64,000 bases of DNA, taken from assembly GCA_907165135.1 (NCBI GenBank), contig OU015569.1, positions 372,001 to 436,000 on the forward strand. The letters are read 5' to 3'. Within the stretch, counting starts at the first letter, position 1, and every line of letters begins with the position of its first letter. The position numbers were made by a program, and so were the translations under genes. Below are positions 44,980 to 49,536 of the stretch, one piece after another. The notes beneath the pieces were generated by a model. The model saw only the letters and a program-made list of their open reading frames with translations, was not told where the DNA came from and did not search any database. The stretch comes from Oikopleura dioica (lineage: Eukaryota; Animalia; Chordata).

Positions 44980-47326
44980 ATGTCCTTCGGCAAAGGCGAT
45001 TTCGGCGGCGGCTCTCTGAGCACAAGCCCCGGGGCGAGTTCCAGCTCGACGATGGACTACAACAGAATCACACAAGTCGTTTCCGCGAACACCACGAAAA
45101 TTCAAAATCACGTCAAAGAGATCAAAAAATTAGCTGAACAAGTTGGAACCGAATTGGATAATTCAGACGTCAGAACTAAAATGTAAGTCTTTTCTTCATT
45201 ATTTTATTATTAAAATTTCGAGAAGCCGAAACCTGCGGCTTCTAGCTTTAAAGTATAAAAGCCGCGCGAAGCGCGGCTACTTTACTTTGCTTTCTCGAAG
45301 CCGCAAGATTCGGCTTCACGTTTTTAATGAGTAACAGATTGAATATTACTACTTTTGACTCGAAATTCATTTCATTTTTAGTCAACAAACTCAGACAACA
45401 ACAAAGCGATTATGTCAAGACACAGAAAAGTTACTAAACGAGTTAAAAGGTCTTCCCGCGCCGGATTCACCCGTAAGACCCCCTTTTCCCCTTCCTGTAA
45501 CTGACTGTAACTCTTTAGGCGGAGAAGCGGGAGCGAAGAATAACCCTAACTCGTCTGGCGAACAATTATTCGAACGCGCTGAACGAGTACCAAAGAGCAG
45601 TCGCGACTTGCTCAATCGCGAAAAGGCCCAAATCAGCCAACAGAGCAACTCATCCGAGGGCAACTCTTTGATCGCGCTGGATAATGGGTAAGAATCGAAA
45701 TATTTTGCGGCTTTGAGCATCAAAATGGCCCGAGCTCAGCAACCTGTATAGAGAACCTGAGTCAGGGTCTGAAAGATCTTATAAGGCTTTTTATTAAAGA
45801 TTTTTCAGACCCTGACTCAGGTGTTCTACGCAGGTTGCTCAGCCCGGGTCTTTTTGTCGCAAAAGCCGCAAATTTTATATAAAGCGCTCCGCGGCTTTTG
45901 TAATTTATCAATCCCTTTTTAACGTAAAATTCTAGCGCTGGTCAAGCCCAATTGCAGCAACAGCTCTCGCCAAACGAGATGGCTCAAATGCAGGATCGCG
46001 AAAACGCGATCATCCAGCTCGAGGTAAATCAGCAGCAGCAAGAGCAAATTGAGCTGGACCCGCTGCAACGGGCGCAGGACGAGGAGCTGGGCCGCCTCGA
46101 ACAGGAAATTGAGGATATGGCCGAAGTGTTCACGGAGGTCCACAAACTCGTCCATGAACAGGGCGAAGTTGTCGGTAAGAAGCCTTTTTAACTCTTTCCA
46201 AACGACTTAAATTTTCAAATAATTAAAATCAATGAGTGCTATTTTAAAATTTTACTGATTGAATGGCTTTTACACGTGATAATTACTAATTTTCAGATTT
46301 AATCAGCCTGAATCAAGACTAATAGATAGGGTCGCCATTTAACGGAAAAACGACTCTATGACGTGTTTGTTTTAACGGATTTAACAATCTTCGATAGGGT
46401 CCCCTTTTTAACGGATTTTCTGGAACCTAGATCAAGAAAATCCGTTATTTAAGGGACCCTATCTAAGATTGTTGAATCCGTTAATACAAACACGTCATAG
46501 AGTCGTTTTTCCGTTAAACTGGCGAGCCTACTTCTGTGTTTTTTTGATATGCGAGTATTTTTTCGATTTGTATTCAAAATTTGCCATATCCTCAAATTTC
46601 CACGTCCTGCGCGGTCCCGGCTGAAAACTGCAAAATTCCGATTCGCAAGATTACGAATTCTGAATTTGTGTTTTAGGCGGACATCGCGGACGTGAACATG
46701 ATTTTCAAAGACCTTGCCACAATGGTGCATGATCAGGGCGAAATCATCGGTAAGTTTCAATTTCGGGGACGCCCTTTTTTAAAATTTCTTGTTTTCTTGA
46801 TTTTTGGATTTTATGTTTAACTTATTCGTTTATTTATAATCTCGGTGTTCAAAGTTGAAATTACATTTCAAAAGCTTAAAATATTTTTTAGACTCGATCG
46901 AGCAAAACATCGAAACTGCAGTTGTCGACATTCAATCAGGAAATACACAGCTTCGTCAGGCCCGAGAGCATCAGGTGTGTACGAAGTTCTAGAGCTACCT
47001 ACTTTGTGTAGTTTTGAATCCCCATCGACGCCTCTGATTGGTCAAACGAGCCCATATCTTTGGAAAAATGGGAAGTGCCTCTGATTGGTCAAGCAAGCGC
47101 TTTTCCCTTTCTCTAGAAATATGGGTTCGTTTGACCAATCAGGTGCGTCGATAGGGATTCAAAACTAATTCGCTTGATTAGCGACACTTTTTTCTCGAGG
47201 CCTCTCTTTTTAAAACCATATTTTCAGCAAGCTGCGCGGAAGAAAAAGTTCATCATCGCCATCGTCTTTCTGATCTTCATTCTGGTGCTGTTCCTGATCA
47301 TCTGGTTCTCGTGGAAGACCTCGTGA
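44980..47326 (+). CDS. STX7/STX12: Syntaxin-7/12-like Qa-SNARE with alternative SNARE half-exons
   Basis: DYNRITQVVSANTTKIQ, RLANNYSNALNEYQ, AIIQLE|ADIADVNMIFKDLATMVHDQGEII|DSIEQNIE, TM FIIAIVFLIFILVLFLIIW. Confidence 0.93.
46339..46517. repeat. ~180-bp near-perfect hairpin in the syntaxin intron between the alternative SNARE exons
   Basis: TTAACGGAAAAACGACTCTATGACGTGTTTG... pairs with ...CAAACACGTCATAGAGTCGTTTTTCCGTTAA. Confidence 0.85.
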
Positions 47327-48539
47327 GTCTTTCCCAGTTCTTCTATCGTTCAACTTAATTTCTTCAATTTCTTTTATTCCTTCCAGAGATTGACCTTTCT
47401 TGTTTTTGCGAGTTGATTTTTTCTCCGGGTTTTTTCAGTTTTATAATTTAAAATTCTATTCTTTTCGTTCACATGTCAAAAAAACGACCCTGGAAAATTT
47501 CAACCGCTGTATTTTTTTTATCACAATTACGAACTTACACACTTTCCGCTACGATTCTTATTTTAAACAGACACGGTATTCTAGAGTCTCTGTGACCAAT
47601 CGACAGTACACTTTATTTTTACTATCATTCATGTTCAATGTCCGGTGAATTTTACTGTGCAATTCTCCAATTCTAGCTGAAGTTGACCCACTTTTCTTAC
47701 CTTCCGCTGGGCCCCCTTTTTTCTTCAACTTAACCTCTTGCCATTTTCGAGCGGTTTAACCCGTTGTGCGCGGCGCTTTCCTCCACGCAAACGGGTTAAA
47801 AATACGGGCTGGTGGCACGAAGCGTCAAAAAGTTTGTCTGTGTGGCTATTTGACTGCTGATTGGCCGGTTCGCTGAGTAAAGGTTTCTTATTGGCTTTAA
47901 GTTTTTGGCCAATCAAAAGCCTGTGTTCTGTCTACCGGCTAATAAGCAGCCAAATAGCCATACATGCAAATTCTATCGCTTCGTTCCTTCAATTCTCAAG
48001 AAATTCATGCTCAACTCCGCACAGACAAAGCAAAATGACAAATTTCCGCAACTGTATTACTATTCAACATTCGTATTTCCACAAAACCACTTCTCAATCT
48101 AACCATTCATCTATTTCAGAACTTATGAGAAAAGCGCTTCGCGACAGGAAGAGTGCTCCAGCTCCAGTTGAAAGAGGAATCTACTGAGAAACTGGAACTC
48201 CGGTCCGGAGTTGAGCAAAAAATGGAAAGTGAAGAGCGGAAAAAGCCGGCTCCAGCCAAACATTCCAGCGCCGAAAAATGGAGCAGGTTCAGGCGAAGAC
48301 GAAGAAAACGACAGGAACCGCGAAGAATCATCGGAAAAGCTTCAGGCGAAGAAGACTCAGAAAATGACGACGGAAACGATCGGAAAAACTCCTTTACCCG
48401 ATTATGCGAGGAAACAATCCTCTGCTGCTCTATATTATTCAATGAACCATTACACCTTTTACACTATTACACTATTTTTTTAAACTCAAGACTCTTTTCA
48501 ACCTTTTCTTGTTTTCAGAAACCGGATAAAACTCAAAAG

Positions 48540-49255
48540 ATGCCACCAAAGTTCGATCCCACCGCCATCGTCGAGGTCTACCTCCGAGTTGTTGGTGGCG
48601 AAGTCGGTGCCACTTCCGCCCTTGCCCCAAAGATCGGTCCCCTCGGTCTCTCCCCAAAGAAGATCGGTGACGACATCTGCAAGGCCACTGGCGACTGGAA
48701 GGGTCTCAAGATCACTGTCAAGCTCACCATCCAGAACCGACAGGCTCAGGTAACCCTTCATCCTCTTCCTTCTTCTCGTTTTGATGGCCAAGACCGCGGG
48801 GCGGTGCCCGTTTAAAGCAAAGAACTTGTCGGGATCCGCTAAGGAGGTGGACTCACCTGCGTAGCTTTTCATGGTCGAGGAGGAGCTTGTAGCTTCACTG
48901 AATAAGTTCGAACGATTCTAGGTCTCCGTCGTCCCCTCCGCCTCCTCGATGATCATCAAGGCCCTCAAGGAGCCCCTCCGAGACAGAAAGAAGGTCAAGA
49001 ACAGTAAGTCCCCCTCTTTCTATTCCTTCCGCTAATCGCAACTGCTCAGTCCAGCACAACGGTAACATCACCATGGACGACATCATCAACTGCGCTCGAA
49101 TCATGCGACCACGATCTGGCGCCCGGGACCTTTCCGGCACCATCCGAGAAATCCTCGGCACTGCCCAGTCCGTTGGATGCACCGTCGACGGCTCCGACCC
49201 ACACGATCTCATCGAACAGATCCGGGCCGGCGAACTTGATGTTCCTCTTGAATAA
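48540..49255 (+). CDS. RPL12: 60S ribosomal protein L12 (uL11), 3 exons (48540-48749, 48922-49003, 49050-49255)
   Basis: MPPKFDP...[28 protein letters not shown]...[18 protein letters not shown]|[18 protein letters not shown]...[14 protein letters not shown]. Confidence 0.98.
48781..48862 (+). promoter_or_regulatory. Intronic RNA element resembling the 28S rRNA GTPase-associated centre (H42-H44), candidate RPL12 autoregulatory site
   Basis: GTCGGGATCCGCTAAGGAG matches eukaryotic LSU GUCGGAAUCCGCUAAGGAG 18/19, ACTCACCTGC matches 10/10, and AGACCGCGGGGCGGTGCCC matches AGACAGCAGGACGGUGGCC 15/19, all in collinear order. The rRNA reference is from memory of the human/yeast sequence. Confidence 0.8.
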
Positions 49256-49536
49256 ATACTGTAGCTTGAGTTGAGCAACAAAAAATCAATCTTTGGAGAA
49301 TCTTCGTTTTGCTTACGATCATTCTCTTCCTTGTTTTCATGTGCTTATTTGCAGGGCCAGATGAGTAGTTTTATTGCGTATTTACAGGGCATTACAGTAA
49401 CAGTTATTGCTTGTGCCAATAAACGGGCTCAGAAATGATGGCAAAATCGTAGCTATGCCGGCGGACGTGGCTCTTATCCGACTTCAGCAGCGGACTTCTT
49501 GGCAAAAGTCCCTTCGGATATCTGATCCAGTATATT

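Follow-up and report, generated by a model that had tools for sequence, protein, structure and literature searches.

Feedback in which a ribosomal protein recognizes a mimic of its own ribosomal RNA (rRNA) site is well known. In bacteria, rRNA-mimic leaders regulate translation or attenuation, and the L10 leader of rplJL imitates, in part, the H42-H44 region of the stalk base in order to sense unassembled stalk proteins. To our knowledge it is the only known bacterial mimic of this region, and it is bound by L10(L12)4, not by L11. In yeast, RPL30 with its kink-turn mimic and the introns of RPS14B and RPL22B act on splicing: assembly of the spliceosome is blocked when the ribosomal protein attaches to an rRNA-like structure in the pre-mRNA of its own gene. 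A metazoan example is L10ARE, a conserved intronic stretch of 40 nt in RPL10A that is bound by the gene's own protein, uL1, and switches 5' splice sites towards an isoform subject to nonsense-mediated decay (NMD) (Takei et al. 2016, PMC4937301). For RPL12, the gene of uL11, autoregulated unproductive splicing has been known since 2000 in C. elegans (Mitrovich & Anderson 2000), and a human RPL12 isoform of the alternative splicing-NMD (AS-NMD) type was described later (Cuccurese 2005; both as cited in PMC4937301 and PMC8047918). In the papers that cite these reports, no cis-element or rRNA mimic is named. Here we describe a candidate RNA site of this kind in a chordate. Intron 1 of RPL12 in the 64,000-nucleotide stretch of Oikopleura dioica DNA analysed here (contig OU015569.1, positions 372,001 to 436,000; the window) carries a mimic of the complete H42-H43-H44 three-way junction of 28S rRNA, the GTPase-associated centre (GAC).

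The element would add an unusually explicit case to the rRNA-mimicry feedback of ribosomal proteins, and it differs from each of the described systems. With the bacterial L10 leader it shares the mimicked region, while the leader lies at the 5' end of its transcript. Like L10ARE it is short, conserved and located in an intron of a metazoan gene for a ribosomal protein; the protein and the rRNA site are others, and the Oikopleura element is a three-way junction of ~90 nt found so far in Oikopleura-type lineages only. The yeast systems use other proteins and motifs, and the RPL30 site overlaps the 5' splice site, whereas the element described here is tied to the 3' splice-site side. The protein and the logic are those of C. 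elegans rpl-12, where excess uL11 leads to an unproductive isoform; the mode proposed for Oikopleura is retention of the whole intron. The nearest item for the gene itself is a conserved, uncharacterised structure of ~57 nt in the RPL12 5' untranslated region (UTR) of Pezizomycotina that was proposed to be autoregulatory (Gao, Jones & Rivas 2021, PMC8216456); the text of that paper makes no mention of rRNA mimicry. In full-text searches we found neither a GAC mimic in an RPL12 intron nor a defined cis-element for RPL12 autoregulation, the original AS-NMD reports being represented there by the papers that cite them.

The element lies on the forward strand at 48781-48871, within intron 1 (48750-48921), and is collinear with H42-H44 of 28S rRNA. 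The original prediction had named three rRNA-like blocks, and all three stand at the positions it gave: TTGAT...GTGCCC at 48781-48809, GTCGGGATCCGCTAAGGAG at 48828-48846 and ACTCACCTGC at 48851-48860. The human rRNA that it quoted is correct for the core; a true eukaryotic large-subunit (LSU) rRNA fragment (L013) reads GGACGGTGGCCATGGAAGTCGGAATCCGCTAAGGAGTGTGTAACAACTCACCTGCCGAAT. This fragment, which scores 324.6 bits with RF02543, served as our reference, and its H42-H44 consensus structure was taken from a sub-scan at 196 bits. When intron 1 is aligned locally with the fragment, the score is 40, a value reached by 0 of 300 shuffles (mean 14.2, standard deviation 2.3, maximum 23). A single instance of the motif CCGCTAAGGAG-N4-12-CTCACC is present in the 64-kb window, where 0 are expected. 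A covariance model, R1, was trained on eleven intron copies only, with no rRNA among them. It matches the 28S rRNA in L013 (4370-4460) end to end with 53.5 bits (E 7.6e-14), and in the window it scores the element at 77.3 bits and matches nothing else. The predicted match to H42-H44 is thus confirmed in sequence and structure against genuine 28S rRNA, and chance likeness is excluded by the motif count, the shuffle test and the match of R1 to 28S. Thirty columns are invariant among the introns, and 28 of the 30 hold the same base in rRNA in the model-guided alignment. They comprise the AGA of the H42 internal loop and the equivalents of E. coli positions 1057-1061 (including U1060), A1077, 1079-1083, 1085-1088 (including A1088) and 1101-1105. 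The invariant columns that are identical to rRNA make up the core of the junction.

The layout of the element follows the rRNA closely, with departures at its outer ends. The distal H42 strand at 48781-48788 pairs with 48864-48871 (6 of 8 pairs in the window copy); this helix was missed by the original prediction, which ended at 48862. The H42 internal-loop AGAC follows at 48791-48794, with its AGA invariant and the same as in rRNA. The proximal H42 strand CGCGGG (48795-48800) pairs with CCTGCG (48856-48861), as had been predicted and in agreement with the Rfam structure. The basal 5' strand of H43 at 48802-48809, equivalent to 1057-1064, pairs with 48831-48838, and the 1062 and 1076 equivalents form the anticipated Watson-Crick pair of C48807 with G48833. 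The equivalents of U1060 (48805), A1088 (48845) and the C1082/G1086 pair (48839/48843) are likewise intact. The C-UAA-G mini-loop (1082-1086 equivalents, 48839-48843) is the same as in rRNA in the window copy, and a shortened H44 hairpin, GAG-GUGGA-CUC, occupies 48844-48854. The lineage-specific apical part of H43 (48810-48830) replaces the 1067 loop. This replacement had been foreseen as a 17-nt extension; in fact 21 nt stand in place of the 9 nt of rRNA, a net gain of 12 nt. Among relatives the H43 insert between the conserved base strands ranges from ~8 to ~44 nt and consists of lineage-specific hairpins. The stretch between GGAG and CUCACC, which holds the 1095 loop, measures 10 nt in rRNA and 5-6 nt in the introns. 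Replacement or shortening is limited to the two apical loops that contact factors, in keeping with what had been claimed. In the ribosome both apical loops contact elongation factors and the N-domain of uL11, while the C-domain of uL11 together with P0 holds the stem and the junction.

Database models of known RNA families do not report the element. Rfam gave no match in the window at gathering thresholds, and nothing relevant at E<=10 in 48700-48960, the L10 leader included. A 90-nt piece of the 3401-position RF02543 model does not surface in such scans, and the dedicated model R1 was built for this reason. Three other identities were considered and rejected. An LSU rRNA gene or ribosomal DNA (rDNA) pseudogene is contradicted by the missing RF02543 match on the intron and by conservation with compensation in place of decay. 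An intron-hosted small nucleolar RNA targeting the GAC is not supported, as no such family matches and the element is sense, not complementary, to rRNA. No curated Rfam cis-regulatory family, L10_leader among them, matches the intron.

Relatives were collected from marine metagenome contigs by an exon 1 search, with a stop-free reference, and by a DNA-pattern scan of JGI metagenomes. Many metagenomic open reading frames (ORFs) run from exon 1 into intron 1, and their tails back-translate to the motif in differing frames. All three JGI metagenome matches to the short-H44 motif lie inside RPL12 intron 1. The sample consists of 11 distinct RPL12 intron-1 sequences, the window included. All eleven introns stand at the same codon, in phase 0 after IQNRQAQ, and all eleven carry the element with compensatory changes; the absence or random decay in orthologous introns that would have spoken against the original prediction is thus not observed. 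Comparisons between lineage groups give 26-58% identity at four-fold degenerate sites in the flanking exons and 66-92% in the element core (53 columns). These sites are near saturation even though RPL12 is highly expressed and codon-biased, and the rest of intron 1 shows no comparable conservation between the groups.

For the analysis of pairing, the Rfam pairs were transferred onto a MAFFT alignment (A1) and the distal H42 helix was added. Standard pairs fill 88.3% of the cells, against 34-44% when the 3' partners are slid by 1-3 columns. Half of the pairs (12 of 24) have changed on both sides, and the covariation score of 0.407 exceeds that of shuffled alignments (0.194; 0 of 500 reach the observed value). 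RNAalifold, to which no structure was supplied, arrived at this three-way junction too, and 11 of its 21 pairs are compensatory. At the 1062:1076 pair (29:77), four lineages have G-C, three have C-G, one each has A-U and U-A, and two show G·A, the rRNA state, while 1063:1075 is found as C-G, A-U, U-A or U-G. The H42 pairs vary between C-G, U-A and U-G and between G-C, A-U and G-U, and the proximal pairs 19:104 and 20:103 covary. In H44, a single lineage has A-U at pair 90:97, and the other ten have G-C. The sequences of the distal H42 helix are unrelated from lineage to lineage, yet pairing persists, with 7 of 8 pairs changed on both sides. The A·C mismatch of rRNA H42 is retained in eight lineages, the C:G pair of the mini-loop is invariant, and its loop reads UAA in every lineage but L018 (10 of 11), where UGA is found. 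The overall pattern is one of a frozen junction with frozen unpaired core bases, around which the apical loops are replaced by lineage-specific hairpins. From the sequence comparison the element is evidently under purifying selection with covariation.

These comparisons bear directly on two simpler explanations. The collinear similarity to rDNA would suit a neutral, decaying rDNA fragment in the intron, at least as regards descent from captured rDNA. Conservation across 11 lineages with compensatory changes, at synonymous sites near saturation and within an intron that is otherwise not comparably conserved, leaves neutral debris or chance likeness with a practically negligible probability. It could also be that the fold has a structural role only, drawing together the ends of a long intron for a spliceosome used to introns of ~45 nt, and that the likeness to rRNA is an rDNA relic. 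The freely covarying distal helix that closes the element would fit such a clamp, as would the minimal size of intron 2 (46 nt), the 3' part of intron 1 that has the size of a minimal intron, and insertions in the 5' spacer that are themselves foldbacks. A clamp would not, however, freeze ~28 unpaired or junction bases in the rRNA state at saturated synonymous divergence, and it needs no three-way junction. We regard a purely structural role as improbable.

The position of the element within the intron is fixed on one side only. In each of the 11 lineages 44-50 nt separate it from the 3' splice site, while the distance from the 5' splice site varies from 24 to 301 nt. The 3' module (48872-48921 in the window) is of constant length, runs from the element to the 3' splice site and presumably holds the branch site; with a distance of only 44-50 nt it has the size of a minimal RPL12 intron. 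The element therefore abuts the region where the branch site lies and U2 must bind. The long versions of intron 1 (L019 335-587, L018 328-395, L017 1122-1282) contain foldback inverted repeats that resemble miniature inverted-repeat transposable elements, with 27-60 nt per arm. All of these insertions stand upstream of the element and none between it and the 3' splice site.

In the window lineage the intron is spliced normally. RPL12/uL11 occupies 48540-49255 (+), encodes 165 residues in three exons from an ATG at 48540, and its closest named protein is O. dioica uL11 (P0040). Exon 1 (48540-48749) comprises 70 codons and ends in phase 0 after ...IQNRQAQ. Intron 1 measures 172 nt with GT..AG ends, about four times the size of intron 2. 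Exon 2 (48922-49003), intron 2 (49004-49049; minimal, 46 nt, efficiently spliced with ~900 junction reads per run) and exon 3 (49050-49255, TAA stop included) complete the gene. Two metatranscriptome contigs of 556 nt match the window with 0 mismatches in one and 2, in exon 3, in the other. The exon junctions are present in these contigs, and both contigs skip exactly 48750-48921 and 49004-49049, so that both introns are real and spliced in this lineage. The mRNA begins at ~48516, directly after ...tgttttcag, and upstream of this start the contigs carry GATTTCGATTGTCTAA, the 3' part of the 40-nt O. dioica spliced leader (SL). RPL12 is hence SL trans-spliced at an acceptor near 48516.

Transcripts that keep intron 1 are found in two sister lineages. 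L018 and L019, both from one JGI sample, are full-length cDNA contigs that run from a template-switch oligo remnant through the spliced leader, the 5' UTR with exon 1, the complete intron 1, the joined exons 2 and 3, the stop codon and the 3' UTR to a poly(A) tail. Their exact 40-nt spliced leader agrees with the O. dioica sequence in PMC6883708. Intron 2 is present in all genomic relatives that cover the region, among them L017, which shares 96% identity with L019 in the element core; since it has been removed in L018 and L019, these RNAs are selectively unspliced at intron 1. The expected unproductive, otherwise mature mRNA thus exists in two related lineages. Retention is unproductive in 11 of 11 lineages, by an in-frame stop or a frameshift. 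In the window it leads to an in-frame TAA at 48813-48815, within the apical part of H43; this stop is specific to the window lineage, the others having a stop elsewhere or a frameshift. A cryptic donor in the H44 hairpin (between GGAG and GTGGAC) was also considered and rejected: five lineages have a CUUAU or CUUAA loop without the GT, and the cDNAs retain the whole intron. Neither the 11 introns nor the cDNA contigs support a conserved cryptic donor or a partial-intron isoform. Sequencing-run searches found 2 of 16 (0.13) of the window's intron words in RNA runs, which is suggestive of intron-bearing RNA from related lineages.

Taken with the known biology of the GAC, these features point to a feedback loop. 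Four parts of the rRNA are preserved in the sense-strand mimic: the H42 stem together with its internal loop, the H43 base, the 1082-1086 loop and the H44 base. These parts are the three-way-junction core where uL11 docks in the ribosome, beside P0/uL10. The element lies in the transcript of the gene for the very protein whose binding site it resembles, and it is conserved with covariation; by these features it would belong with the rRNA-mimic autoregulators. We consider it probable that the intron 1 mimic binds surplus uL11 and so makes splicing of intron 1 depend on how much unassembled uL11 is present. We infer the ligand, the block of splicing upon binding and the fate of the isoform as follows. 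uL11 that is not taken up by 60S assembly would bind the element in its own pre-mRNA, possibly together with P0 or the nuclear paralogue Mrt4. The bound complex, always 44-50 nt away from the 3' splice site and just upstream of the branch-site region, would hinder the spliceosome on intron 1. The transcript would still be SL trans-spliced, lose intron 2 and be polyadenylated, with intron 1 kept. The retained intron would bring a premature stop or a frameshift, no uL11 would be made, and the RNA would probably be degraded or detained. When uL11 is scarce, intron 1 would be removed normally. Such uL11 sensing fits the RPL-12 splicing feedback shown experimentally in C. elegans, as that work is described in the papers citing it.

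The ligand might be another protein. P0/uL10 and its nuclear placeholder Mrt4 recognize the rRNA domain that uL11 binds, and one of them may bind the H42-junction mimic, in which case RPL12 would be coupled to assembly of the stalk base and not to free uL11. The proximal and distal H42 helices and the invariant AGA internal loop are kept, and in the ribosome these parts form the uL10/P0 side of the domain; in addition, the bacterial L10 leader is bound by L10(L12)4 rather than by L11. Against this speaks the location of the element in the RPL12 gene, in which all metagenome motif matches fall, and the fact that the frozen nucleotides of the H43 base, the 1082-1086 loop and the H44 base are those of the uL11 side. 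Cooperative binding by both proteins would moreover suit sensing of surplus uL11. We therefore judge a switch run by P0 or Mrt4 in place of uL11 to be unlikely. A different use of the same contact is a decoy, in which the intron, excised or retained, would itself be a stable RNA acting as a buffer, chaperone or escort for free uL11 and not as a splicing switch. The same conserved, putatively protein-binding core would serve it, and there is enough intron-bearing RNA for contigs to be assembled from poly(A) libraries; several RNA runs also contain intron words. A free RNA would hardly account for the strict spacing from the 3' splice site, though, and we found no evidence of a discrete stable intron RNA. 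A decoy merits little credence next to a splicing switch that responds to surplus uL11.

Several observations weigh against this splicing switch and should be set beside it. Folding energies are ordinary: z is +0.83 for the whole intron and 0.0 to -1.5 for single elements, although the genuine rRNA domain is equally ordinary (z -0.52). In rRNA the apical parts of H43 and H44 pack together and help form the tertiary fold that L11 recognizes, as seen in crystal structures of L11-RNA complexes; with these parts gone, the fold and hence the affinity for uL11 may differ. The mimic also spans H42, on the P0/uL10 side, and uL11 need not be the sole or the main ligand. In the window lineage only the spliced form is found among assembled contigs. 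A retained-intron contig alone is weak evidence of regulation, because an element-free RPL12 cDNA contig from another marine eukaryote (L021) is also partly unspliced. This contig (1-1040) is polyadenylated and template-switch-primed, keeps two introns (~332-524 and 624-862) and lacks one at the Q70 codon; it demonstrates that RPL12 RNAs with incomplete splicing are assembled in these metatranscriptomes. Finally, the read-through ORF P0015 from ENA contigs, a close relative of the window locus, hints at a variant without the 3' half of the element. Its 5' half is kept; the tail then apparently passes straight from GGATCCGCT to AGGAGGAGCTTGTAGC further downstream, as if ~36-39 nt between AGGAGG repeats had been deleted, and diverges afterwards. 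P0015 may be a naturally occurring deletion allele or a pseudogene copy, or it may have arisen in assembly.

Two single-cell RNA runs with the same species label (X22 and X23) give exon reads that are mostly 90-95% identical to the window. Compared with 48400-49400 they show dozens of mostly synonymous exon differences and a different 3' UTR, which fits deeply diverged cryptic lineages under one species name. Intron reads from such divergent lineages could not map, and the two runs are thus uninformative on retention in the window lineage.

The likeness to rDNA also suggests an origin. A ~90-nt rDNA fragment (H42-H44) may have been captured in an RPL12 intron of an appendicularian ancestor, or have created this intron, and may then have been trimmed to its protein-binding core, so that it would now sense, in the nucleus, stalk-base proteins left unassembled (uL11, perhaps with Mrt4/P0) and block recognition of the branch site from 44-50 nt away. 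We put this history forward tentatively, as a possibility with rather less behind it than the feedback itself. If true, it would document the birth of an rRNA-mimic feedback loop from rDNA and not by convergence, and a likely captured-rDNA origin bears on how such loops arise in general. With its entire three-way junction the element is among the most complete rRNA mimics in eukaryotic genes known to us. Evolution would here have performed a deletion experiment, in which the junction core was frozen while the loops that contact elongation factors and drugs of the thiostrepton class proved dispensable. The element thereby predicts a minimal uL11/P0 recognition surface of the GAC, and its fixed spacing from the 3' splice site offers a testable model for how a bound protein could block a spliceosome on a minimal intron.

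Among the metagenome relatives and three outgroup loci compared, the distribution of the element is so far confined to lineages that have the Oikopleura spliced leader and/or a near-identical exon 1. R1, run with its filters off on three outgroup RPL12 loci, one from a nematode (L020) and two from unidentified marine eukaryotes (L021 and L022), gave no match. L020 and L021 have no intron at the codon that hosts the element, and the intron of L022 lies two codons earlier. The nematode locus belongs to Pristionchus; no intron follows its IQNRQA codons, and its introns show neither an R1 match nor significant rRNA similarity. An identity with the nematode-type rpl-12 AS-NMD element was rejected on these grounds, as Pristionchus has neither a homologous intron nor an R1 match. 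At 1500-1880 of L020 there is an unusually long intron of several hundred nucleotides after KKVKNG, at about the place of Oikopleura intron 2. It contains scattered 8-nt identities to the GAC (GGAGTGTG) that are not significant (score 16, shuffle mean 14.8). Possibly it is this intron that is regulated in nematodes, with an element of another kind.

Two observations concern the surroundings of the gene. A syntaxin/SNARE gene lies just upstream of RPL12 in the window (46024-46749) and in two metagenomic lineages (L004, 652-1047; L005, 1-16); two element-bearing lineages thus also share this upstream neighbour. The adjacency of syntaxin and RPL12 is a conserved micro-synteny across diverged appendicularian lineages. 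The contigs L011 and L012 have an identical intron 1 and differ by ~245 nt in the length of intron 2 (spacing from KN to HNGNIT 295 against 51 nt), which suggests a recent insertion polymorphism.

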